A stretch of DNA of 64,000 bases from Oculina patagonica (GCF_052425735.1 NC_135763.1:9424001-9488000); one strand, 5' to 3'; shown: positions 3,608-63,700, counted from the stretch's first letter. Notes: generated by a model not told the origin, from the letters alone. Translations and numbers: made by a program.

Positions 3608-4911
3608 GTCCAAGAGAACTATACAGCGAACCGTTCAAAGAAACCCAAATAGTGTCACCAATATATGTCTTTATCCAATTTAACAATTCAAGGAATTGAA
3701 TAATTAAAATATGCTTAAACAGTACTAAAATTATACCTAATAATTCGTTCTTATCTTCCTCAGATATAAGGCTTGTACAAAAAAAAATTATATAAAGGTA
3801 TTTGGATTAAAAAAGGAATAAACTGTTATTGCTGTTTATGAGTTTAGAGGGTTTACTGAATATTTTTAGGATTACTTCAGTGCAGCGGTATAGGAACACT
3901 ACCACGCTAAATAAATTAACAAAACCAATAAAAACTATACAAATTATAATTAATTCATGAAAAAAAAGTTAGTCTAAAAATCTTCCATAAAGCAAATGAA
4001 ATACTGCAGACCTCAAAAAGGCAATCGATTTTCCACACATGGCAGTCATGTGCAATGAAAGCAAATTGAGAGGCGATCTTGATGTAAATAAACAAAAATG
4101 ATTTTCGATTTGCTTTTTCTCCATAATTGTATTTACAAGTAAAACATCAACACCAGTTGCAACATGTCGTGAAGTGAGAATTTATAATAGTTGACAAGTT
4201 CTGAAATTGACAGGTTGATTGTTATCACGTATAAATTAACCGACTCAGTCAAGTTTTCTTCCATAAGGATAGTTAAGAATTTTTAAATATAAATATGATT
4301 TCACGGTTTTTTCACATCTCTAATTACTAACAACATAAAAAACTCTTCAACTTATCAGTTTAACTGACCAAATTAGACTCAATATATATTTTCAACGTTG
4401 ATTGGATTAGCTTCTGACTTTGCGTGACAGGCACGTGAGAATTTGACATGTACAACTAAGATGGATGTAAGTGGTCATTAAAACAATGGTTATTCTGCTT
4501 CATCCTTCCTTACTTAAGCGAATGAAAGATACAACTAAAATGAAACTGAATGGATGTATAGATCGTCAAAAAAGTTTCCTTTTTGGTCCGCAAAATGTGA
4601 TGACGTCATATGACTTGGGTTCAGAGCAACCTCGTCCCCGCGGTCTTCTCCGCTTTTCAAAATGGCGGGAGAGAGAGAACCTTGGGAAAGGCTGAACTTA
4701 CGCCATCCCGACTGGCTAATTTATACCTGAACTTCTGATTGGTTTAAATAACCCTACACAAATATTTCGGGCGTGGCGGGTTTTAATGGAATCCGATTTA
4801 AATGAATTTAAGCAAAACTGAATACATTTCCAATCCTCCGTAAGAAAAAAGATGGCGCCACGCAATGCATTATAGGTAAATGTACCAAATTAGAATACAC
4901 AAACAAACAAA

Positions 4912-6864
4912 ATGGCGGCTGTTGAGACAGAAGTTCTCCTCTCTGAAGACGAAATTCCAGGGGCCAAGTTAGCAAAAGAAATCGAAAGTCTTACAAAATC
5001 AGAAGCTCTCAGATGGTTGAAGTGTCGAGGATGCCACAATTTGAGTCAACTCAATTTAAAAGAGCTGAAAAGCAAGTAAGTCGTAGATCGCGTGAGTGGT
5101 GTTTCAAGCTGATTTAGCCGGTGTAACAATTAGTTTTTTATTAAATACATTGGCCAAAATTTGTTTTTTTTTCCTGTCATTTCTAGAGTCAAATTATACA
5201 TCGAAAATGGCTGGGATAAAAAATTTCTAAAAGACCCAGACGGCAAAGTTTACGAGAAAAAGAGAAAAGAAGCACTCGGAAAGGAGCGCAAAGTTCTGGA
5301 AGAGATACTCGACGGCGATATTCCCTCCGACAGCTGGACGTCTTCCCTGGCAGGAGTTCCTATTGTCACTCACTCGGTTGTCGAAAAGTACTTTGAAATG
5401 TCTTTAGATGTAAAGCACGTAAGGGAAGGCTATGCCTTCTCCAGGACAAAAAAGTTCGAGACGTCCGGGAAACCCCTGCGAATAAATCTTTTGCCAAACC
5501 ATAACAACATGTTTGTGCTTGAAGGCTACACACGGCCTGCAATGAAACAAGCCAAAGGTATTTCGTCTGGTGAAGGGCTTTATGCTTGTTCAATAATTTT
5601 CGATAAAATCTCAGGAAAAATTCTAGCGGCAAAAGACCATTCGTGTGCTGCTGGAAAACGGGGATTTTGTAAGCATGTTGCTGCTCTTGCCTACAAACTG
5701 GTGGAGGCCACCATGTCATACAGTGCCGAACTTCCGAAATCCATCAGCTGCACCCAAGTCCGCCAGCAGTGGGGAATTCCATCCCTAAGAGCCTCGCAAG
5801 ATCCTGAGAAGGAGGTGATGAAAAGGAAGCCTCTTCAAGAAATTGTGTTTGAAAAGCATCTGGTACAGCGAGACAAAGATGGAGGAAGAAAGCGGAAATT
5901 GCCAGTCGAGGTGAGTTGTGATTACACGTCAAGACCAAACGGAGAGCCAGCAATTGATGATGAAAGAGTAACTAAGCTATGTGTTGACTTGGCTTCAACC
6001 AAGTGCCCTAAAGTTGTATCTGAAATTTTGAAACTTAACTCTTACAAGGAAACAGAAAATGTGTCTGGTGTTGTAGAAAAGAATCATGTTGTGTATCAAA
6101 ATAAGGAAAATGTAACTGCAGCTACCCCACCTGTTGCTCAAAGAAGCTCTGAATGGTTCAGTAAGAGAATTGGAAAGATAACATCATCAAAGGCACCTGC
6201 TGTTATTGGTTTACAAGGGAAGAAAGATTTTCTGGAAACTTGGGACTGCATCAGGAATAAAAAAGCAGAACCTGCAAAACATTTCAGGAACTATGATAGG
6301 GGTATTAAATTTGAAAATGAAGCTGCAAAATGTTTTGCAAGTGAGAGTGCTGCTGTTGTGCAACAATGCGGCCTTTACCTTCTGGCAAGTGACCAAACTT
6401 ATGGTGCTTCCCCAGACAGAACATTTCTCGGAGAGACGTGCAAGAAGCTTGTAGAAATTAAAACTGGAAGGCAAGTTACCCTTTCTGGACTGTGCCTTTT
6501 AGAAATTAAGACCCGTGCTGAAGGTAATTTGGAACCCCTAGCTTCAGTTACTGGGGCTCATGTTGCCCAAGTACAGTTACAAGAGGAATGTACACAAGCG
6601 AATGTTTGTATCCTTCAGTCCTTTGTTCCAGAGAGTAAGCATTCAAAATATTTTTTAATCAGAAAGGACAATAGTTTTATAAATTCCTTCAAACTATGCT
6701 GCAATGCAATCCTAACAAACAACAAAATAGACAATAACAATGCAGGTAACAATAAGAAGCTGGAAGGTTTGCAAAATCGAGTGCCTAGCTTTGAGGACTT
6801 ACTGCCCTTACGGCAATGGGCAAATGAAATTGCCCGATCATGCATGGAGGTTGCTTTTCTGTAA
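4912..6864 (+). CDS. Transposon ORF: SAP-like N-terminus, SWIM-like Zn finger and YqaJ/lambda-exonuclease-like domain; exons 4912-5075 and 5187-6864
   Basis: Exon 1 reads MAAVETEVLLSEDEIPGA...RWLKCRG. The GT-AG intron 5076-5186 (gtaagt...ttctag) joins it in frame. Motifs: HSCAAGKRGFCKH (SWIM-like); QRSSEWF..R...ITSS, GASPD, LEIK, QVQLQ (YqaJ). Confidence 0.85.
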
Positions 6865-7738
6865 TCTTACTCATGTATAACAGAACGTCTCTCTGACAAG
6901 AGCTTTAACTTAAATCAGCATTTCAAAAAAAATTTTTGAGTGTAAATATTTATTTTAAAATAAAATTTGATGCAATACATGCAATTCATATTTTTAAATG
7001 TAGAAGTTAACTTATAAATTATACTCTTAAATATATCTTAAATATGTTATCAATAAATTACCACATGTAAGAAAATAATTATAATTAGTGTTTGACACTG
7101 GATATTATATATGTTGATAATTAAATTAATGATTATTTCACTTCTGACTTGAACAGTTTCACTGCACTTGATTATATATATAAATATTAAAAAATTATGT
7201 GCTCTTCAAAATCCTGTATTCTAAAACTTTCAGGGATATCAAAGTCTGGAATAAAATATATCACCTAAGTATGTACAAATCGAATAGAATATACAAAATT
7301 GTATGTACAAAACTTTACATATTTGCTATACCAAAAAGAAAAATACTATAAGATGTTGAATTATTTTTGCTTCTGTTACTTGTAATGCGTTGTTGCTGAG
7401 GTTGCTGAGTTTATTATTGTTCCAAAAAAATACCCCTTTCTCTCCGACAAAAGGTTTTTCGGTTTGAATCCCCTTGGCCCATTTTGGCTTTTGATCTGAA
7501 CCACCCCCCCTCCCCCCCCCTCTCCCCTTCCCCCTCAAAATACTTACTGACCTCCCATGGGGTGGGCTTGGATATTTTCTGGATATGTTCTGGGTTTTAT
7601 TTCTATTTTTTTTCTACTTTTTTACTTTTTTTGTTACCCTGGTTTATGTCAACCAGTTTCTGAAAAAACACAGCCGGGTGGGCTACAACACTTGATCATG
7701 AAAAGAGAATTGACTGTACCTATAAATCATGAAAGATG

Positions 7739-9313
7739 TTATTCCTCGTGTTCTTCTTCATCATTAATTAATGGTGGGAGGAACGCAGTCAACCAGCAAC
7801 ATACTTTCCAAAGTTTTGATAGAAGGTGTCCATACCGGATCGGGATATTTCCTTTAAAAATTCTGAAAACCTTGATCCTTCTAATTGCTCGCTCAACATG
7901 CACTCTGACCTGAGAGTTCTTTCTGTTATGCACATCTTCTTCTTCGGTAAACTGCTTCTTGCCTTCCAATTTTACTGGTGTGTCGATTCTTACTCCATAA
8001 TCATCCAGGATATGTTGCACAATAAAACCCTTGTCTGCCAACCATCTGTCCCCTCTTTGGGCCAATGCCAAAATTCCACTTTGAACCAGGATCTCTTCAT
8101 CTGATATGCTTCCAGGATACACCTCAGAAACAAATGCTGGGAGCAACATTGGGGACAAGGCAAGAAGAGCTTTGCCGGTATTATGCCCTTTATATTCAGA
8201 CCATGTGGCACTCTGCTGAATAATTTGCGAAGATTTCTCAATGAAGATCTCAGTGCAGTCAATAATGAGATAGACATCCTCGTGCTCTGGCTTGAAACAA
8301 CTGGGCAAAAACTTCTTCATAGTTTCACGGTCAGTTAGGAATTTCAATTGTCCCATACAATCATGCATACGGTCAATCCAAGTGGTAAAAATCTTTGACA
8401 CCTCAGTTTGATCGATAAAAAACCTGTCAGCAAGGTCTTTCTCTAGTAAGCCAAGCCTTAGTCTATTCAAGGTTAAAAAGAACTCGTCAATCTCGACGAG
8501 ATTACGAGGTCTTCCTCTAGACACTACATAAGACGGATGTTTCGTGACATTAGTGTATCCATTATAATAATTAAGTTGGTAACCCGACCTTGGCCTTAAA
8601 AAATTATATAATGCTAGAAATGTTTTATAGTCTGGCAACCCAGTGTAAAATCTGATGTCGTTGTCCGAAAGCATGAACCTGTTTACACCAAATCTCTCGA
8701 TTTTTCTTTGTTCCTCAAGCGACTTTATTTTCTCCAGTAGTCTACTGATTTCATTCTTGCACGAACAATCTCCTTTCGCGTCTAAGCCTTGCTGCACCGT
8801 TGAGTCGTTATCATCTGTTTTGCTCTTAAGTGAGAAATTCTCAGCCTTTTCTAAAACGGTCTGGTTATTCTCGTCAGTGTCCTGCTGAACTACTACCTCG
8901 TCAAGACCTGATTTGCCATTCGGTGGAATATTCTCGGTGTTTACTGGAAAGGTGGCACTGTTACCGCTAACAATTTTCGCTGTTGAGGTTGGTTTTTTCT
9001 TGTCCTCGGCGGTGGGATTTGATTTTTCCTGCAGCAAACTTGAAATATCTACCGGCCACACAATCTCACCACTTTTTAGGTCCCTCCTCGGAAAAATTGA
9101 GGGTATATTGTTAAATCCATATTTGCGTCCTCCGGGAAAATGCGCACTACATACGCGGTCACTCGATTTCCACCTGTAGTTCTTTCGTCTCAAACTCAGT
9201 GCACTTATCCATTTTCGCCTTAATGCTTTCTCTTTTGGGAAAGTATAATATTTCAGAGTCTTATTTTTCCAACTTTTATGACCGCAGGCTGCAACTGCAC
9301 AGCTAAAGGGCAT
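7739..9313 (-). CDS. Transposase: THAP domain, HTH and DDE_Tnp_4 (Harbinger/HARBI1-like)
   Basis: THAP: CAVAAC...FP...W...VCSAHF...IPSIF. HTH: LRLGLLEKDLADRF. Catalytic motifs IIDCTE / LADKGF / RVHVERAIRRIK are intact. ATG at 9313. Confidence 0.92.
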   Translation of the reverse strand: MPFSCAVAACGHKSWKNKTLKYYTFPKEKALRRKWISALSLRRKNYRWKSSDRVCSAHFPGGRKYGFNNIPSIFPRRDLKSGEIVWPVDISSLLQEKSNPTAEDKKKPTSTAKIVSGNSATFPVNTENIPPNGKSGLDEVVVQQDTDENNQTVLEKAENFSLKSKTDDNDSTVQQGLDAKGDCSCKNEISRLLEKIKSLEEQRKIERFGVNRFMLSDNDIRFYTGLPDYKTFLALYNFLRPRSGYQLNYYNGYTNVTKHPSYVVSRGRPRNLVEIDEFFLTLNRLRLGLLEKDLADRFFIDQTEVSKIFTTWIDRMHDCMGQLKFLTDRETMKKFLPSCFKPEHEDVYLIIDCTEIFIEKSSQIIQQSATWSEYKGHNTGKALLALSPMLLPAFVSEVYPGSISDEEILVQSGILALAQRGDRWLADKGFIVQHILDDYGVRIDTPVKLEGKKQFTEEEDVHNRKNSQVRVHVERAIRRIKVFRIFKGNIPIRYGHLLSKLWKVCCWLTAFLPPLINDEEEHEE

Positions 9314-12167
9314 CACAAACTATCGGAGCCCGCTTCAGTAGACTCGCAGGTTGAACGCCATTTTGATTGTTTACGTATGCTAATTTGGTACATTTACCTA
9401 TAATGCATTGCGTGGCACCATCTTTTTTCTTACGGAGGATTGGAAAGGTGAGTCTATTCCGTTATTTTTATATTTTACATGATTCAATCCATACCGTAAA
9501 AGTAGAACTGAAAGTTGATAAACAGAAATATTACAAACATATGATTCAATGCTGATTTGGCGAAAGCGAGCTTCTCGCTTTGTTGTTTTGTGTGTTCTAT
9601 ATACGCGATTCTTCCGATTTCCTCCAACAGTAGTACTATCAAAGAGAAGTGTTTGTAGCTTAGATCATTCGGAATCGGGCTGCAGCTATGTGCGAGATAC
9701 AAAGCTAAAAGAGGCCTTCCTTGTTGATGACCTACGGCGCCCTTGTTCTTTTATTGCAGTAACCTCGGTTCTAATTTGTTGCGTCTGAACACGTATTCCG
9801 TAATGTCTGCATTCTCCCGAAACTGCTTTTAGTAGCTTTTAGTATCTGCTGTATCTGTACTCATTATATATATATTAATTGACGCCACTCCTTCTTAGAG
9901 GTTTCCACAAGTTGCTCGAAATTTCCCAAAAATTCGCCTGTAATTTCTCAAAAAATTGCTCAAAAGTTAATTTAAAATCGAAAAAAGTTGCTTCTGTTAA
10001 TAAAAGTTGCTCTAAAGTTGCTCCAAAAAATCCAAAACGCTGCTTCTAATCAAGGAAATTTCTCTTAATATATGCTAATTTTTCCTATGAGTGTAAGATT
10101 TCTAAGCAGTTTTATGCAATTTAGCACAAATCGTTAAAATTTTTGACAAGTTACCCCAATCAGCGGTAATGAACACGTAAGGTTTTTCATGCAAATTCAT
10201 TTTCCAAGGAAATAAGAGATATTTAGTGCTTGTTTTTTCCACATTAATGGTCATTTTTATTTTTGTAGCGTTCATTAAACTTTAGACAAACTGAACAAAA
10301 AACGGATAACAAGAGGAAAAATATTCATGTCCTTTTAATAATGCGACGACATCGTTGCCCTTGGTAAAAATCTTTGTAGTTTAGACAAATACAATGTACA
10401 ACTAATGAAGAGTTCCCTCCTTGCAGCACGCCTGCGGTTCGGTAGCGTCATTGTATTCAACATAGCAAGTCCAAGATAATTTTACGAAAAACTATTATTT
10501 AGAAGATCCTTTTACAGATAAAACGGTTCGTTTCTTTTGTCTTTGGATCTGAAATACTTTATTCAATCGAAAATCGGAAAATTGCCACCCCAAGGCTAGA
10601 TGCCTGTCATGTTGATTACAACTACCGTGATGCACGTCATAGGGGGAATTAGACATTTGGCGTTTATACGATGATAAAAGCCGCAAGGCAATTAGAAGAT
10701 TTGGTAACAGCTTTAGCGGGACAAGTATTCTCGATACAATTTACTTTTTTGTGAAAGTCTTCATCTCAGAAATAAAATCCTGAAGAATCAATATTATTTT
10801 TGAAGAAAAGCAGGCAAGAAGACCTTAGCGAAAAGGAAAACCTTTTAGCTACATTTTCTTTTGTTTATACGCATTAAAGTTTGTTTTTCTATCTTTTCAA
10901 TTACTCTCAAAGATAGTCATAACAAGTACGCCCAAAGTCTATTTGCCCTTTTTTACTTTAAAAAGGCGTTTTGATGTGAACTACAAATTTACATCAAGGC
11001 CATAGGCAAGTCAGTTATATTTAATAGTATAAGGCACATCGGCGAGCTTAAAATATTGAACTTCTTAAAATGCCACAAAATGGAAAATTGTTTTCGAACA
11101 AAGGAAGCGAAGTTTTTCGGTGCAAAGCTTGTACTGATAATAAACAAAAAACGTTAAACTTTAAGAACGCCTTTTTTTGTTTATACGAATTAAAGCTTTG
11201 GTTTTAAACGACCGTAAGGGTAGTTAAGTAATTTCAATTTATGATACAGGTGCAAATGAACGCAATTAGGCAAAATGGTTATTTCCTTTATGTCACGCTA
11301 AAGCAAACATAAACCATTTCATAAATTTGCATAAAATACAATTTATATTGCTTATTCGCTTCTTTCTGTGCGGTATAATAAATAATACGCGTTTTCACTA
11401 CACCGAAGGAGAAAACTAATAAGCGACATGTCCGGCCGGCAATTAAGCGACTGTTGCGGTGCTGACGATCAAGAAACTATCACAGCCGGAGTACAAATTG
11501 TTTATAGCAACGATTAACAATATAAGTCGATTTGGGGTTTATGCAGGATTACCATTTCGTGATGATTCCTTGAGATTTTATCCGTGGCGAATAAAAGAAA
11601 TGTTTTCCTTCCAAATTATTCGCGCTTTTACTGCTCGAATTTCTTTTCAGGCTCTTGTATATTGTCTTGTACATTATTGTCGTTTGCTATTATTGTTATG
11701 TTTCTATATTGACTTCTCCAGTGTCGATTCTCAGTAATGCTTAGTTACCACCATTAGAGGAAATTTGGGTTGGTAAATGAGAGGGTTATCTCTATGCATC
11801 CGCCAGCTTAGGCATTTAATTCTTTGCTATCATATTGGTATATAACTTCTTTTGAAATATCTGATACAGTGATAATTGCTTTTTTTAGCCACTTTTTCTT
11901 CCAAAATAATAACTGACAAAGAACATCTAATTTGCCGAAGCTCAACCCTTCAAATTTACGTTTCTTTCTCAGATCCATTTGTGTATTACCTTTGACCATT
12001 GAGAAATACTGTCCAATTTCTGCAACATATGGTGTTTAGTCCAATAATCTAGATAGGCAAAGTTTAAAAGTTAACCGCATGTATTTCTTTCAAAAATGGC
12101 TCTGTGGTTGGCAAATTTTCACGTTTGGGATTAGTTATTACTGCAAATAAAATTCAGCTATGCGCTG

Positions 12168-13223
12168 CTACACATAGCATTCATTTCTCATTTCAAAGTT
12201 GAGATCAAGGTTTCTAAATTCCATCCTCCTCCGGCTGTGATCAGCTACGATGTGTTGTGTTACAGTGTTTGTTTGCGTTTGGTCAGCATTCTGGCTTGAT
12301 CCTACACTTTCTGTAAGATGTGAACAAATTGTGTGTCCAATTCTCGTTTTCAGACTTCTGTCGAATGCGCAATAGATAATGGGGTTAATTGCCTCGTTTA
12401 TGAAGGCCCCAAACATGGCTATTTCGTTTAGAGTGTGTCCTCGATGAACACTCTCCGTGCCAGATATAATTCGAACAAAGCTCAGGACAAAAGTCGGAAG
12501 CCAGCACACCGTGAATGCTGCTGCAACCAAACCAGAAGTCCGTGTTACACGCCTCTTGTTCTGGCAAACAAAAGAATGTGATGCATTAGGAAAGTTAACT
12601 GTTGCTACCAAAGGGCTTCTTCCCCACATTATCAATGCCACATGAAAATAACACCAACATAAGACCATGAATGGCGCGAAAAACACAACGCCAAACTCGA
12701 CTGCCTCATACAGTTTGTCCAGCCAACTGATGGGAAGTGCTAGCGGTGTACAGATTATCTTGGATTCTATCTCTTGCACGCTAAACATGTACAGATAAGG
12801 AGTTGTTAAAACGGCAGGTACAAGCCACGATAAAGTTATCATGCGCCTGACAAGCCGTCCTTCAAGCTTGGGTAGATATGGACGAGCCAGGCTGCGATAT
12901 CGGTCAAAAGCAATCAACGCGTGAGTACAGACCGCCGTGCCAGATACAGCAATTTCAATAAACTCGACTATCTTGCAAAGCGCTGTTCCAAAGATCCACT
13001 CGCCGAGAAGTTCACGAGTGAACTCGAATGGAATCGTTAAGAGGCCAACAACGAGATCGGAAAGCACTATGTTCAAAATGAATTGATAGGTTGGGCGATT
13101 TTTAAGGAGTTGCTTTCGGCATTTAAGCAACACATAGGCTACTAATGTGTTTCCCACAACAGTTATTACAAATATAACAGCAAGGAAAGCAGCTTTGGCG
13201 ATATCTGAAGCTGAATATGCCAT
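12168..13223 (-). CDS. Class A GPCR copy 3
   Basis: Intact 7TM ORF with LSDL, DRY, CWLP and NPIIY; ATG at 13223. Flanks 11738-12170 and 13230-13860 align with the copy 1 flanks. Confidence 0.93.
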   Translation of the reverse strand: MAYSASDIAKAAFLAVIFVITVVGNTLVAYVLLKCRKQLLKNRPTYQFILNIVLSDLVVGLLTIPFEFTRELLGEWIFGTALCKIVEFIEIAVSGTAVCTHALIAFDRYRSLARPYLPKLEGRLVRRMITLSWLVPAVLTTPYLYMFSVQEIESKIICTPLALPISWLDKLYEAVEFGVVFFAPFMVLCWCYFHVALIMWGRSPLVATVNFPNASHSFVCQNKRRVTRTSGLVAAAFTVCWLPTFVLSFVRIISGTESVHRGHTLNEIAMFGAFINEAINPIIYCAFDRSLKTRIGHTICSHLTESVGSSQNADQTQTNTVTQHIVADHSRRRMEFRNLDLNFEMRNECYV

Positions 13224-13910
13224 TTCCAGGAGCACTTTACAGCGGACCGTTCAAAGGAACCCAAGTTGTGTTGACAGGAAGAAGCTTTTAATTATGAATG
13301 CATGCAATTTAACAATTTAAGGACAAATAATTTACACCTGCTTAAAAGAGTACGATGAATTATATCCGATAATTTGTTGTAATCTTCCTAAGACATTAGA
13401 CTTGAACGCACGTACCAAAGTTTAAACGACACTTGGATTTAAAGAAAGAAAGAAATTGTTTATCATTTTGGAGGGTTTACTGAATATTTTTGGATCACTG
13501 TACAGCTGGAAAGGGACACTTCTATGCTAAATAAACAAAAAAAACTAATGGAAAATTATCATATTTTTAAATTCATGAAAAACGGTAGTCAAAACACCTA
13601 AGGCTAGCTAAAAATTCGAAGAAGCAAATTACATACTGCAGTCCTAACAAAGAAATCGATTCTCTACACATGGCACTCATGTGCAACGAATGCAAAATTG
13701 AGAGGCGATCTCGACGTGAGTAAACAAACATTTTTGTTTTACTTACCTTCCGTTATTATATTTACATAAAAAACATCAATACCAAATGCAACCTGTCGTG
13801 GAGTTTACACTAATAGTGAGAATTAATAATAGTCGAGTTTTGAAATCTACGGGTAGTATTAACAGTTTAAATTTTAAAATTCTGATGACGTCAAATGAAA
13901 AGCACCATTA

Positions 13911-18016: not shown

Positions 18017-19120
18017 ATGATCGTTCAGGTCATGGACATGGCATATTCAGCTTCAGATATCACCAAAGCTGTTTTCCTTGCTATAATATTTGTTACAAAT
18101 GTTGTGGGAAACACATTAGTAGCCTACGTTTTGACGAAATACAGAAAGCAACTTCTTAAAAATCGCCCAACCTATCAATTCATTTTTAACATAGTGCTTT
18201 CTGATCTCGTTGTTGGCCTCTTAACGATTCCATTCGAGTTCACCCGTGAACTTCTCGACGAGTGGATCTTTGGAACAGTGCTGTGCAAGATAGTCGAGTT
18301 TATTGAAATTGCTGTCTCTGGCACGGCGGTCTGTACTCACGCGTTGATTGCTTTTGATCGATATCGCAGCCTGGCTCGTCCATATCTGCCCAAGCTTGAA
18401 GGACGGCTTGTCAAGCGCATGATAACTTTATCGTGGCTTGTACCTGCCGTTTTAACAACTCCTTATCTTTACATGTTTAGCGTGCAAGAGATAGATTCCA
18501 AGATAATCTGTACACCGCTAGCACTTCCGATCAGTTGGCTGGACAAACTATATGAGGCAGTCGAGTTCGGCGTTGTGTTTTTCGCGCCATTCGTGGTCTT
18601 ATGTTGGTGTTATTTTCATGTGGCATTGATAATGTGGGGAAGAAGCCCTTTGGTGGCAGCAGTGACCTTTCCAACTGCACCGCAATCTGTTGTTTGGCAG
18701 AACAAGAGGCGTGTAACACGGACTTCTGGTTTGGTTGCAGCAGCATTCACGGTGTGCTGGCTTCCGACTTTTGTCCTGAGCTTTGTTCGAATTATATCCG
18801 GCACGGAAAGTGTTCACCGAGGACACACTCTACACGAAATAGCCATGTTTGGGGCCTTCATCAACGAGGCGATTAACCCCATTATCTACTGCGCGTTCGA
18901 CAGACATTTGAAAGCGAGAATTGGCCTACACACATTTTGTTCACATCTTGCAGAAAGTGCAGGATCAAGCAACATCGCTGATCAGACAAATAACACCGTA
19001 GATGAAAACACACTGAATCAAATGGATGTCAGAAACCTTCATGATACTACTTTGCCAAATGACAAACCAAGCCGGCCAAGAAACGAGACTATAAACTCTA
19101 CATGCTCGATATTCCATTAA
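18017..19120 (+). CDS. Class A GPCR copy 4
   Basis: Intact 367-aa 7TM ORF with DRY, CWLP and NPIIY. Alternative ATGs at 18032 and 18038. Acceptor ...ctttaagcag| at 17914. Confidence 0.93.
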   Translation: MIVQVMDMAYSASDITKAVFLAIIFVTNVVGNTLVAYVLTKYRKQLLKNRPTYQFIFNIVLSDLVVGLLTIPFEFTRELLDEWIFGTVLCKIVEFIEIAVSGTAVCTHALIAFDRYRSLARPYLPKLEGRLVKRMITLSWLVPAVLTTPYLYMFSVQEIDSKIICTPLALPISWLDKLYEAVEFGVVFFAPFVVLCWCYFHVALIMWGRSPLVAAVTFPTAPQSVVWQNKRRVTRTSGLVAAAFTVCWLPTFVLSFVRIISGTESVHRGHTLHEIAMFGAFINEAINPIIYCAFDRHLKARIGLHTFCSHLAESAGSSNIADQTNNTVDENTLNQMDVRNLHDTTLPNDKPSRPRNETINSTCSIFH

Positions 19121-26069: not shown

Positions 26070-27173
26070 ATGGTCATTCGGGTCATGGACATGGCATATT
26101 CAGCTTCGGATATCACCAAAGCTGTTTTCCTTGCTATAATATTTGTTACAAATGTTGTGGGAAACACATTAGTAGCCTTCGTTTTGACGAAATACCGAAA
26201 GCAACTTCTCAAAAATCGCCCAACCTATCAGTTCATTTTTAACATAGTGCTTTCCGATCTCTTTGTTGGCCTCTTAACGATTCCATTCGAGTTCACCCGT
26301 GAACTTCTCGACGAGTGGATCTTTGGAACAGTGCTGTGCAAGATAGTCGAGTTTATTGAAATTGCTGTATCAGGCACGGCGGTCTGTACTCACGCGTTGA
26401 TTGCTTTTGATCGATATCGCAGCCTGGCTCGTCCGTATCTGCCCAAGCTGGATAGAAGGCTTGTCAAGCGCATGATTACTTTATCATGGCTTTTACCTGC
26501 CGTTCTAACAACTCCTTATCTTTACATGTTTAGCGTGCAAGAGATAGATTCCAAGATAATCTGTACACCGCTAGCACTTCCGATCAGTTGGCTGGACAAA
26601 CTATATGAGGCAGTCGAGTTCGGCGTTGTGTTTTTCGCGCCATTCGTGGTCTTATGTTGGTGTTATTTTCATGTGGCATTGATAATGTGGGGAAGAAGCC
26701 CTTTGGTGGCAGCAGTGACCTTTCCAACTGCACCGCAATCCGTTGTTTGGCGGAACAAGAGGCGTGTAACACGGACTTCTGGTTTGGTTGCAGCAGCATT
26801 CACGGTGTGCTGGCTTCCGACTTTTGTCCTGAGCTTTGTTCGAATTATATCTGGCACGGAGAGTGTTCACCGAGGACACACTCTACACGAAATAGCCATG
26901 TTTGGGGCCTTCATCAACGAGGCGATTAACCCCATTATCTATTGCGCGTTCGACAGACATTTGAAAGCGAGAATTGGTCTACACACATTTTGTTCGCATC
27001 TTGCAGAAAGTGCAGGATCAAGCAACATCGCTGATCAGACAAATAACACCGTAGATGAAAACACACTGAATCAAATGGATGTCAGAAACCTTCATGATGC
27101 TACTTTGCCAAATGACAGACCAAGCCGGCCAAGAAACGAGACTATAAACTCTACATGCTCGATCTTCCATTAA
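26070..27173 (+). CDS. Class A GPCR copy 5, tandem duplicate of copy 4
   Basis: Intact 367-aa 7TM ORF, near-identical to copy 4. Acceptor at 25967. Confidence 0.93.
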   Translation: MVIRVMDMAYSASDITKAVFLAIIFVTNVVGNTLVAFVLTKYRKQLLKNRPTYQFIFNIVLSDLFVGLLTIPFEFTRELLDEWIFGTVLCKIVEFIEIAVSGTAVCTHALIAFDRYRSLARPYLPKLDRRLVKRMITLSWLLPAVLTTPYLYMFSVQEIDSKIICTPLALPISWLDKLYEAVEFGVVFFAPFVVLCWCYFHVALIMWGRSPLVAAVTFPTAPQSVVWRNKRRVTRTSGLVAAAFTVCWLPTFVLSFVRIISGTESVHRGHTLHEIAMFGAFINEAINPIIYCAFDRHLKARIGLHTFCSHLAESAGSSNIADQTNNTVDENTLNQMDVRNLHDATLPNDRPSRPRNETINSTCSIFH

Positions 27174-32764: not shown

Positions 32765-33775
32765 ATGACAGATACGGCTTCTAGCATCGCTAATGTTGTT
32801 AGCGTTGGAGTGGGAACGCTTCTTGCCATCGTGGGTAATGTTATTGTCGCGTACGTTCTGATTAAGCGGTGGAAAGTACTTCTTAAAAACCGTCCGACTT
32901 ACCAGTTTATTTTAAACCTCATCTTATCGGATCTTGTTGCTGGTTTATTGCTTTGCCCTTTCGAATTCGTACGGCGTCTTATCGGTACGTGGATGTTCGG
33001 AACAGCTCTTTGCAAGATCATCGATTTTGTCAAAATCTCGGCATCTGGTACAGCCATTATGTCTCACACGCTCATTGCAGTTGATCGATATCGGTGTTTA
33101 GCACATCCTCATCTTCCCAAGCTCAAATCAAGGCTCGTTAAGCAGCTGATAGCGATGTCATGGGTGGTCCCTGCCTTAGTGTCCACTCCGTATCTGTATA
33201 TGTTTGAAGTTGTCCAGGTCAATTTATACCAGATGTGCACGCCGCTTGCTATTCCAGTGCCATGGCTTGACAAACTTTATGAAGCTGTTGAGTTCGGTGT
33301 GGTGTTCTTTTTCCCCTTTTGTGTGATCTGCTGGTGTTATTACCACGTGATCCGGCTAACACTTCGAAGGCAACCTCATAATTCAGGGCCGGCACGGATA
33401 CCAACTGCACAAATTGCTCTTCAACGAAGCAAAAGGCGAGTGACGAAAACAGCCTGCTTGATCGTGGTGGCTTTTATCGTCTGCTGGTCCCCGACTTTTG
33501 TCTTGAGCATTTGGAGAATTGCGTCCGGAACAGAAAGTGTACACCACGATCACACACTTCATGAAGTTTCCTTTTTCGGAACACTTATCAACGAGGCAAT
33601 CAACCCCATCATTTACAGTGCATACGACAGAAATATGAACGTTTGTGCGTACATTTATTGTGGACATCGCGTCTTCGACGAGACCAACGAACCTGAATCC
33701 ATCAGATCAAACGAAACGATTCGCAATCGCCGCAGTATAAATACAAGGCAGTTGCAGTTTGAGGAACCTTCTTAA
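32765..33775 (+). CDS. Class A GPCR copy 6, divergent paralog of the same family
   Basis: 336 aa; shares LLKNRPTYQFILN, WLDKLYEAVEF and INEAINPIIY with copies 1-5. Acceptor ccaagcag| at 32602. Confidence 0.92.
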   Translation: MTDTASSIANVVSVGVGTLLAIVGNVIVAYVLIKRWKVLLKNRPTYQFILNLILSDLVAGLLLCPFEFVRRLIGTWMFGTALCKIIDFVKISASGTAIMSHTLIAVDRYRCLAHPHLPKLKSRLVKQLIAMSWVVPALVSTPYLYMFEVVQVNLYQMCTPLAIPVPWLDKLYEAVEFGVVFFFPFCVICWCYYHVIRLTLRRQPHNSGPARIPTAQIALQRSKRRVTKTACLIVVAFIVCWSPTFVLSIWRIASGTESVHHDHTLHEVSFFGTLINEAINPIIYSAYDRNMNVCAYIYCGHRVFDETNEPESIRSNETIRNRRSINTRQLQFEEPS

Positions 33776-60769: not shown

Positions 60770-63700
60770 ATGGCTTTCAATACACCGTTTCCTGCGTTCA
60801 AGACGACAGGCGATGACAAACGCGACTTGGAAACGTATATAGAGGACTTAACAGATTACTGCATAATGCAAAATTGGTTCGATCCGTCGAAAGAATCTGA
60901 CGCAGAGAAATGGACGAAGCCCGACAAGGCAATTGCTTGTCTCCGCGCATCATTATCCCCGGCAGCAAGAACAGTGTATAAATATAGCCTGGGCCTTAGC
61001 GAAGCCAATCTAAAAAAACCTCATTGTGTTGTTGCCGCCCTTAAAGGATATTATGGTGCTAGCATTGGAGTGTCAGGCGAACGACAAAAGTTTCTTCGCT
61101 TGCTGCAAAACGAAAACGAATCAATCGCCTCCTGGGAGACGCGAATACGTAACCAAGCAGCACAGTGTGAATACGAAGACTTCGCTGATGAGCTAATGAG
61201 GGACCAATTTATCGCCGGTTTAACGTCTGATGCTCTTCGAGTGAAACTTATCGGGAAAGGACACAAACACAAAGACACCGCACAAACAAAGGTTAAGTTA
61301 AGAGAAGTTGTCGAAGTTTCCAAAACGTTCGAAGCGACTATGGTTGCGAATCAGCTCATGAAAACTGCCCGGGACACACAGCAGGAACAAGTAAACACAC
61401 AACAGGAACAAGTAAATTTTACGAGCAAATTGACATCTGTTAATCCGAGGCAAGAACAGCAATTTTCACAGTGTTTCTGGTGTGGAGGCAGCCATCAACA
61501 GCCCCGTCAAAGGCACTGCCCAGCCTTTGGCAAAAGATGTGCTAAGTGTGGGATCACTGGCCATTTCGCACGTACCTGTAAAGGTGGATCAAGACGTCGA
61601 CAAGGGCGACAGCAGCAATCAAATTTTGTCGATGATGACAACGGAGAAGAAGCGTTTGTGGCGGATTGCGAGACACCCCCACAGCTTGCAAGGAAATATT
61701 TTGCTCATCTTCACCTCATACAAGGTGGGAAAACAAAAGTAGTGAAAGCACAGATCGACTCGGCATCCACGTGCAACACTATACCTAGCAGTCTACTAAG
61801 CCAGTTGTTTCCTGACGTAAAGATTTCGCGGACCAAAAGCAAGATTAACACATATGGAACTGAAACCATTCGTCCTGAAGGCCAAGTAACGCTGTGTTGT
61901 GACAGAAGGGGCAAGATTCACACCATTGATTTTCTTGTGGTAAACGTGCCTAATCAGAAACCCCCACTTCTCAGCGGAAGAGACGCGCAAGCCCTGGATT
62001 ACTTGAAGGTGTACGCTGATGAAATAAACGCAGTTGAAGAAGAGATTCCGCGCAATACGCAGTCACTTCCACCACTGGGAAAACTGACAAAGGAAGACGT
62101 GTTACACAACTACTCAAACGTATTTAGGCCGGGTCGCGGAAATCCACTTGGAACCCCTTTGCACATCGATCTTGATCTTAATGTTACTCCAGTGCACGCC
62201 TCAACGCGTCGAGTTCCCGTGGCCAAGTTGGACAGAGTAAATGACGAGTTAAAGAGACTTTGTGATGAAGGCATCATAAAGCCGGTCGCACAGCCTACAG
62301 ACTGGCTCTCAAACATCCTGGTGAAAGAGAAACCGAACGGCAAACTTCGCATATGCATTGATCCTAGTCAAAAGATAAACAAGGCCATCAGAAGACCCAA
62401 GTTCACAATTCCGACTATTGAAGAAAAGCTTCCACAATTGACTAAGGCCAAAGTGTTTACCATTGTCGATGTATCCGAAGCTTTTCACACCATTGTGATG
62501 GATGAAGAGTCTTCCCTACTCACTACGTTTCAGGGACCAAACGGTCGCTACTGCTACACCCGCATGCCATTTGGGATCGCCTCAGGACCGGAGGAATACC
62601 AACGGCGCCAACATGAATTCTTAGACGGTTTAGACGGGGTAATAAACATTGCCGATGACATCTTGTGTTTGGATGCGGAGATTCAAAAGAGGAAGCTGAC
62701 ATCGATCACGACAAAAATCTCATGAGCCTGTTAGGAAAGTGCAGCAGCCATAACCTGCGACTCTCGGCGAAAAAATTGCAGTTTAAATCTCCCTCTGTTA
62801 CCTTCATGGGGCACAAGCTTACCGACAAAGGCGTAGAGCCCGATCCAGCCAAAGTAGCAGCAATCACAGAGATGCCAACGCCCACTGACAAATCTGGGGT
62901 GCAGCGTTTTCTCGGCATGTGCCAATACTTAAGCAAGTTCTGCCATAATTTGTCAGAAACAGTTCTTCCATTGAGGGACTTGACCAAGCAGGATGTTTCA
63001 TTCCTATGGTCAAACAATCATGAAAATGCATTTAACTCGGCAAAGAACCTCATTGCTTCAGCAACTGTATTACGCTACTACGACGCAAACCTTCCCGTCA
63101 CGCTACAAGTGGATGCATCTGAAGATGCGATCGGTGGCGTATTGCTGCAAAATGATCAACCTGTTTGCTTTACATCACATACCCTCAACAGTACGGAGAA
63201 GAACTATGCTCAAATTGAGAAAGAGTGCCTTGCAATCGTCTCTTGCATGGATAAGTGGCACCAGTACTTATACGGGAAACGCGACATAACGGTACATACA
63301 GATCACCAGCCGCTCGAGACGATTTTCAAGAAGCCTCTTAGCAAAGCTCCTCGCAGACTGCAAAGAATGATGCTGAAGTTACAGAGATATCAGTTCACTG
63401 TCCGATACAAGAAAGGAAAGGAACTTTACATTGCGGACACTTTGTCTCGCGCACCTGTCACTGATCAGCCCACCTCCACTGACAAGCAAGAATGCGAAGT
63501 GTTCCGTCTGAAAATGGCTGAGATGGAATTTGAACCAAATCAAGTTACACCCGACACTCTGCAACGAATAAGACAAGAAACTGCCAAAGACCCAGTGCTA
63601 GCAGCTCTACATACGGTGATAGTGAATGGATGGCCTTCAGAAAGAAAGGAAGCCCCAGAGCAACTAAGGCTGTATTGGAACTTCAGAGATGAAATTTCAG

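Follow-up and report, generated by a model that had tools for sequence, protein, structure and literature searches.

We analysed a 64,000-nucleotide stretch of DNA from Oculina patagonica (GCF_052425735.1 NC_135763.1:9424001-9488000; the whole stretch is further referred to as the window), in which positions 4835–9438, judging from their sequence, very probably (roughly 90%) represent a complete and structurally autonomous ISL2EU DNA transposon (PIF/Harbinger-IS5 superfamily) of a stony coral. ISL2EU elements have been described as carrying two open reading frames (ORFs) within ~4.8 kb and as targeting A|AT|T with duplication of the AT (Han et al. 2015, PMC4482050). All of the defining features that could be tested were found here, i.e., a PIF/Harbinger-IS5-type DDE_Tnp_4 transposase with an N-terminal THAP domain and a helix-turn-helix (HTH), an AT duplication in an A|AT|T context (with AT at both ends of this element and of five relatives, and at one end of a sixth), and a second ORF with a YqaJ-type nuclease domain, the sole departure being that the terminal inverted repeats (TIRs) start with CC instead of the usual GG. 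On account of the THAP-HTH-DDE transposase, the YqaJ partner and the AT duplication, the assignment to ISL2EU already made in a preliminary description of this locus is retained.

The boundaries of the element were examined by comparing contigs from four public runs (among them X1 and X2) with window positions 4700–9600. An X2 contig, originating from a coral-metagenome run, joined position 4832 directly to position 9439, thereby skipping 4606 nt and representing an empty site. This contig reads ...ACATTTCCA-AT-TGGAAAGGTGAGTCT..., with one AT only (its fuller left side being GAATACATTTCCA), and has 92 letters on its shorter side, two ambiguous letters and a depth of 23.8, equal to that of the right flank. 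The possibility that it is an assembly artefact was considered and rejected, since its two sides share only 8 nt, so that the 31-mers spanning the junction must derive from real reads. The element itself comprises 4604 bp and reads from CCTCCGTAAG at its left end (4835) to CTTACGGAGG at its right end (9438), with the duplicated AT located at 4833–4834 (supported by the empty-site contig and by the AT flanking all related elements) and at 9439–9440 (supported by the empty-site contig and related elements). The same terminal sequence CCTCCGTAAGAAAAAAGATGG is found at both ends, with an AT adjoining each. Moreover, contigs of other insertions diverge from the reference a few letters outside the AT (left: 4829, 4830 and 4831; right: 9444), as would be expected if these insertions have only a short target motif in common.

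The same ends were found in related elements that were retrieved from other coral assemblies via their proteins, and that are ~83% (L001, L003 and L004) or ~68% (L006 and L007) identical to the window element at the DNA level, or were represented by a left end only (L002). Every relative end reads AT|CC(T/G)CCGTA... (i.e., both ends of L001, L003, L004, L006 and L007, and the left end of L002), and the similarity between the window element and its relatives stops exactly at the flanking AT. The TIRs, as delimited by an inverted-repeat search and by the relatives' ends, are ~83 nt long and occupy 4835–4917 (plus strand, starting with CCTCCGTAAG and containing the start codon of the partner gene at 4912) and 9356–9438 (minus strand, ending in ...CTTACGGAGG), with the outer 21 nt being identical and 78/83 positions matching. 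Their outer 24-nt core, CC.CCGTA.G.AAAAAGATGGCGCC, was identical or nearly so in 13/13 ends of the seven elements, and a search for further TIR copies across the 64-kb window returned the two arms only. The target preference was derived from 13 half-sites of the window element and its relatives, complemented with four half-sites of other copies in the read data. Position –1 was an A in 17/17, position –2 a C in 15/17 and position –3 a pyrimidine in 14/17 of these half-sites, making the target of this lineage YCA|AT|TGR, which is a small extension of the published A|AT|T.

The reconstructed empty site was found to hold a perfect 14-bp palindrome (TTTCCAATTGGAAA), and the element inserted at CA|AT|TG, in the very centre of this pre-existing host palindrome. 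The insertion split the palindrome into a left half (TTTCCA, 4827–4832) and a right half (TGGAAA, 9441–9446), both of which are flank and present in the empty-site contig. It is because of this host palindrome that the apparent inverted repeat (arms 4824–4917 and 9356–9449; 94 nt, 94% complementary) overran the true ends, and that the extent of 4824–9455 initially assigned to the element had its boundaries ~11 to 17 nt too far out. Further outward, a GAATA...TATTC symmetry with a 6-nt offset, which is either fortuitous or pre-existing, gave the appearance of a 6-nt loss; when considered as part of a longer TIR (with a 6-nt gap), this symmetry was rejected, as it is already present in the empty site. 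The case illustrates how host sequence can pass for additional TIR when the target is palindromic.

The preliminary description had interpreted these outer letters as a left tip that lost ~6 nt, in an element of 4824–9455 that may be immobile in cis and survive as a helper in trans or as an early domesticated pair. When a 6-nt gap is allowed for, the similarity between both sides indeed runs outward (GAATA...CATTTCC vs. GAATAGACTCACCTTTCC), and both ORFs are intact. Nevertheless, the empty site already contains ACATTTCCA-AT-TGGAAAGGTGAGTCT, so these letters predate the insertion, and the terminal 21 nt of the TIRs are identical and have an AT beside both, with nothing missing from either end. 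Outside AT|CCTCCG, nothing except for the short target consensus is common to other copies or relatives. The tips quoted earlier, AT|ACATTTCC and AT|AGACTCACCTTTCC, do occur in the sequence but are host flank according to the empty site and the ends of the six relatives, and since both are flank, neither of them (the left ACATTTCC included) is shared by other copies. Copies at other sites, some near-identical, and TIR-carrying derivatives were also found. Taken together, the intact ends, the AT duplication, the empty site and the copies at other sites point to an ordinary, recently mobile autonomous element instead of a helper or domesticated pair, and make the damaged tip highly improbable.

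The host DNA around the insertion (4700–4834 and 9441–9600) is itself repeated, with a depth of ~100–140 in the left flank. An X1 contig corresponds to a diverged paralogue of the uninterrupted site (joining 4802 to 9440 via 33 other letters), and weak matches to the insertion flanks are present at 14.3 and 15.7–15.9 kb of the window.

The transposase gene (7739–9313, minus strand, with its ATG at 9313 and its stop codon at 7739–7741) encodes 524 amino acids without interruption. The product matched the Pfam families DDE_Tnp_4 (E 1.8e-38; 7787–8263), THAP (E 2.4e-11; 9137–9301) and HTH_Tnp_4 (E 4.6e-11; 8354–8491), and alignment of homologues located its catalytic residues at D352 (in IIDCTE; 8258–8260), D427 (in LADKGF; 8033–8035) and E474 (in VERAI; 7892–7894), all three being invariant across 20 aligned transposase homologues. 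The ratio of nonsynonymous to synonymous substitution rates (dN/dS, via the Nei-Gojobori method, comparing the window element with L001–L004) amounted to 0.11–0.18.

The partner gene lies on the opposite strand and is split by an intron. Its first exon (4912–5075, plus strand; 54 codons plus 2 nt, starting with the ATG at 4912) was delineated by conservation of the reading frame, and is followed by a 111-nt GT..AG intron (5076–5186) that restores the frame and a second exon (5187–6864, including the stop codon at 6862–6864) with an open frame of 558 codons from 5188 onwards. The intron is the one proposed in the preliminary description, although the start codon is located at 4912 and not at 4913 as had been implied. 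In 7/7 elements, including the two at ~68% identity, exon 1 has kept its ATG and reading frame and the intron its AG acceptor. The GTAAGT donor was kept in 6/7, L001 having a 4-nt deletion at this place, and the interior of the intron shows indels and little conservation. Homologues of exon 2 were 80–84% identical over its full length, and the same dN/dS comparison yielded 0.175–0.24 for exon 2 and 0.12–0.36 for exon 1. By these substitution patterns, constraint on the partner matched that on the transposase while this lineage spread, with both genes under equally strong purifying selection. In agreement with the preliminary description, both the minus-strand transposase ORF and the plus-strand YqaJ gene are uninterrupted. 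The same convergent gene pair was found in L001–L004 and L007, and in L006 the partner gene is broken by stops.

Since both genes begin within or beside the TIRs, their promoters probably reside there. Within the TIR core, AAAAAGATGGCGCC (TIR positions 11–24; window positions 4845–4858 and 9415–9428) is almost invariant, even in the elements of ~68% identity, and a similar AAAATGGCGGC surrounds the start codon of the partner gene. We presume that this AAAAAGATGGCGCC/AAAATGGCGGC block resembles the YY1-type AAGATGGCGGC core-promoter motif. The right TIR contains an ATGGCG like the left one, which here opens only an 8-codon upstream ORF (9354–9380, minus strand) before the transposase start at 9313; this upstream ATG is not kept in L001 or L003.

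The spacer between the convergent genes (6865–7738) has almost no similarity to the relatives. It contains a C-rich low-complexity stretch (7488–7651) with a word depth of 1500–2600 (vs. ~40 around it) that is absent from the related elements, and that is probably a short high-copy repeat which landed in the spacer. Two database proteins (P0083 and P0097) combine YqaJ and DDE_Tnp_4 in one product, which either results from gene prediction having joined the convergent pair or reflects genuinely fused ISL2EU variants.

The nuclease domain of the partner (6121–6753, plus strand) was delimited by Pfam, a profile search of the Protein Data Bank (PDB) and Foldseek. Exon 2 matched Pfam YqaJ (E 5e-10), a profile of 20 homologues retrieved LHK-Exo (E 2.9e-15) and lambda exonuclease (E 2.8e-12) from the PDB, and the AlphaFold model of the partner (mean pLDDT of 76, and >90 over most of the C-terminal domain) matched lambda-Exo-type structures in Foldseek (E 7e-9, TM 0.73 for 3sz4). 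Alignment of the homologues assigned the catalytic residues to D410 (6415–6417), E439 (6502–6504) and K441 (6508–6510), of which D410 (in GASPD) was invariant and E439 and K441 (in LEIK) were kept in at least 90% of the 20 partner homologues. All five motifs listed in the preliminary description (IIDCTE, LADKGF, VERAI, GASPD and LEIK) are therefore present, with the D/D/E and D/E/K residues being invariant or nearly so. As modelled, the partner C-terminus adopts a lambda-exonuclease fold with the D...E-x-K residues in place, and nuclease activity is predicted.

The preliminary description had furthermore attributed SAP and SWIM domains to the partner, next to the YqaJ domain that the above Pfam match bears out. 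The N-terminal 205 residues encoded by exon 2 were modelled separately (pLDDT of 79), and exhaustive comparison of this model with VIA-align yielded residues 111–215 of ZSWIM8 as the single outstanding match (Z 9.3, root-mean-square deviation of 2.8 Å over 101 aligned residues; the runner-up reached Z 4.6). Foldseek returned nothing below E 0.04 for this N-terminal model, and the Pfam SWIM match on the partner (E 0.35) remained below the cut-off. Compared to the CxC...CxH signature of SWIM, the first CxC is reduced to one Cys, and a further Cys (C134) is present upstream; C134, C153, C161 and H163 are invariant or nearly so among the partner homologues. The ZSWIM8 fold match and these conserved residues together support a ZSWIM8-like SWIM-type zinc-finger region in the modelled N-terminal part (exon-2 residues 56–184; 5353–5739, plus strand). 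A SAP domain, in contrast, is not supported by the sequence searches, and exon 1 looks SAP-like by eye only. No SAP match was obtained with Pfam on exon 1 (E<=10) or exon 2 (with the exons searched separately, while the motif would straddle their junction), nor with seven exon-1 peptides in a profile search of the PDB, nor when the N-terminus of a distantly related homologue was compared with Pfam. The SWIM-type region and the spliced N-terminal exon within the TIR found no mention in the ISL2EU literature searched.

The read data also inform on the state of this family. In both X1 and X2, the element body had a word depth of ~40–45, vs. 20–25 in the single-copy-looking right flank (i.e., ~2x), and the TIR regions (4835–4863 and 9410–9438) reached 2–3x the depth of the element body, with four X1 contigs diverging just after 4863. 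This depth pattern and the diverging contigs suggest that few full-length copies exist next to non-autonomous derivatives (resembling miniature inverted-repeat transposable elements) that retain the outer ~29 nt only. Contigs with 99–100% identity to the window copy were present in runs under four organism labels, and in one such contig the nuclease gene lacks 5 nt. The empty site in another sample, together with near-identical copies elsewhere, indicates that the family moved recently. The genes of L001, L003 and L004 are broken, and those of the window copy are not.

A number of observations nevertheless weigh against a complete and autonomous element. ISL2EU TIRs have been described as 6–259 bp long and "usually" starting with GG (Han et al. 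2015, PMC4482050), in contrast to the CC found here, although "usually" denotes a typical and not a defining feature. Moreover, because 3 of ~145 right-flank positions in the empty-site contig do not match the window, and because the left flank is repetitive, this contig may stem from an allele, from an orthologue or from a paralogous site. The boundaries are settled whichever its origin, but on its own the contig is no proof of polymorphism within one population. Finally, there was no transcript or splicing evidence, with a polyA run filed under the label of a related organism containing four partial reads only. The sole contig spanning the intron (from an "RNA?" run) was unspliced and carried a TIR and a foreign flank, and is therefore probably DNA.

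These RNA data would be in line with an intact but dead or silenced relic that is no longer transcribed, in which case the between-lineage constraint would reflect past activity only. The low number of full-length copies (with a body depth of ~2x the flank) and the broken genes in L001, L003 and L004 fit such a relic as well. However, RNA sampling was minimal, an empty site exists, the 99–100%-identical contigs come from several samples under the four organism labels, and 3.3 kb of coding sequence has accumulated neither stops nor frameshifts, so that we deem a relic unlikely.

The role of the nuclease in ISL2EU has been left open in the literature (PMC4482050, PMC4122938, PMC9179366), and the statement in the preliminary description that it has no established role agrees with PMC4482050. 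From what is known of the family, the transposase would bind the conserved outer ~24–29 nt of the TIRs via its THAP and HTH domains, and would excise the element and insert it into CAATTG, with a 2-nt stagger at the AT in the centre. The partner, in turn, would be a nuclease subunit needed for propagation of the element. By analogy with TnsA, which acts beside TnsB in Tn7, we tentatively favour, at somewhat below even odds, a role in processing the transposon ends, on their 5′ (non-transferred) strand. This runs against the typical behaviour of lambda-Exo-type enzymes, which are processive exonucleases and not site-specific endonucleases.

The main alternative is that the partner stands outside the transposition chemistry and afterwards resects the donor break 5′-3′ on the host side, so that homologous repair, with the sister chromatid or the homologue as template, brings the element back and yields a net gain in copies. 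Its fold and catalytic residues are indeed those of processive 5′-3′ exonucleases that feed recombination (lambda Exo, LHK-Exo), and the partner is constrained as much as the transposase. Host cells, however, already contain resection enzymes, the element encodes no single-strand annealing partner, and conservation of the SWIM-like region and of the N-terminal exon points to a partner that is recruited specifically, either to the transposase or to the ends of the transposon. Resection by the partner thus appears unlikely, though worth weighing beside the favoured processing of the 5′ strand at the ends. If carried through, the latter would make ISL2EU transposase a two-enzyme system, in which cutting and joining of the 3′ strands would fall to the THAP-DDE protein, and the SWIM/lambda-Exo partner, once recruited to the ends, would cut or degrade the 5′ non-transferred strand; we consider this doubtful at present.

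Should the two-enzyme arrangement prove true, it would be a eukaryotic counterpart of the TnsA/TnsB division of labour in Tn7; the intact low-copy element and its empty site would then suit reconstitution, and the strong CAATTG preference would provide a sequence-selective integration system. Irrespective of this, the analysis adds a cnidarian ISL2EU copy that is apparently autonomous and for which the exact ends, an empty site, a refined target (YCA|AT|TGR) and a conserved 24-nt terminal core are available, as well as a first structural description of the partner (with a predicted ZSWIM8-like SWIM region and lambda-Exo-fold nuclease) and the finding that its constraint equals that of the transposase. 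The gain for transposon biology is modest, and the nuclease question is equally approachable with other intact ISL2EU elements.

With regard to the surroundings, the window contains five intronless ORFs of 336–367 amino acids that correspond to rhodopsin-family G protein-coupled receptors (Pfam 7tm_1, E 1e-42 to 5e-45), located at 397–1470 and 12168–13235 on the minus strand and at 18017–19120, 26070–27173 and 32765–33775 on the plus strand. The transposon separates the first member of this tandem cluster from the second. Further downstream, a 651-amino-acid ORF with a reverse-transcriptase domain (60770–62725, plus strand; RVT_1, E 3.6e-11) is probably a retroelement. Retrotransposon genes (RVT_1, RNase H, integrase) also adjoin related ISL2EU copies (L002:11307-15260 and L001:3659-4594), and a retrotransposon has apparently replaced or interrupted the L002 element at its right end.

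When compared to known systems, the coral element most closely resembles ISL2EU of the PHIS (PIF/Harbinger-ISL2EU-Spy) superfamily (Han et al. 2015, PMC4482050; Han et al. 2014, PMC4122938), with which it shares a transposase with THAP, HTH and DDE_Tnp_4 domains, a YqaJ second ORF, an animal host, an AT duplication in A|AT|T, TIRs and a length of ~4.6–4.8 kb. It differs in that its TIRs begin with CC and not with the usual GG, and in that the target in its lineage is extended to YCA|AT|TGR. Related DDE_Tnp_4 transposases also occur in PIF/Harbinger elements, which depend on a second protein of their own and use short AT-rich palindromic targets. However, Harbinger generates a 3-bp TWA duplication and relies on a DNA-binding Myb/SANT partner without nuclease activity, whereas in the coral element the DNA-binding THAP domain is on the transposase itself and the partner is a predicted nuclease. 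In Tn7, the DDE protein TnsB is paired with TnsA, a separate nuclease of the PD-(D/E)XK fold encoded by the same element. TnsA nevertheless has a restriction-endonuclease-like fold and is not of the lambda-Exo/YqaJ type. The resemblance is one of analogy only, without homology. Lambda exonuclease and LHK-Exo (PDB 1avq and 3syy), finally, have the same fold and D...E-x-K active site as predicted for the partner. In contrast to lambda exonuclease, the coral domain has an insertion before the E-x-K strand and belongs to a eukaryotic transposon protein of 613 residues, of which it makes up the C-terminal third and whose N-terminal region is of the SWIM type.

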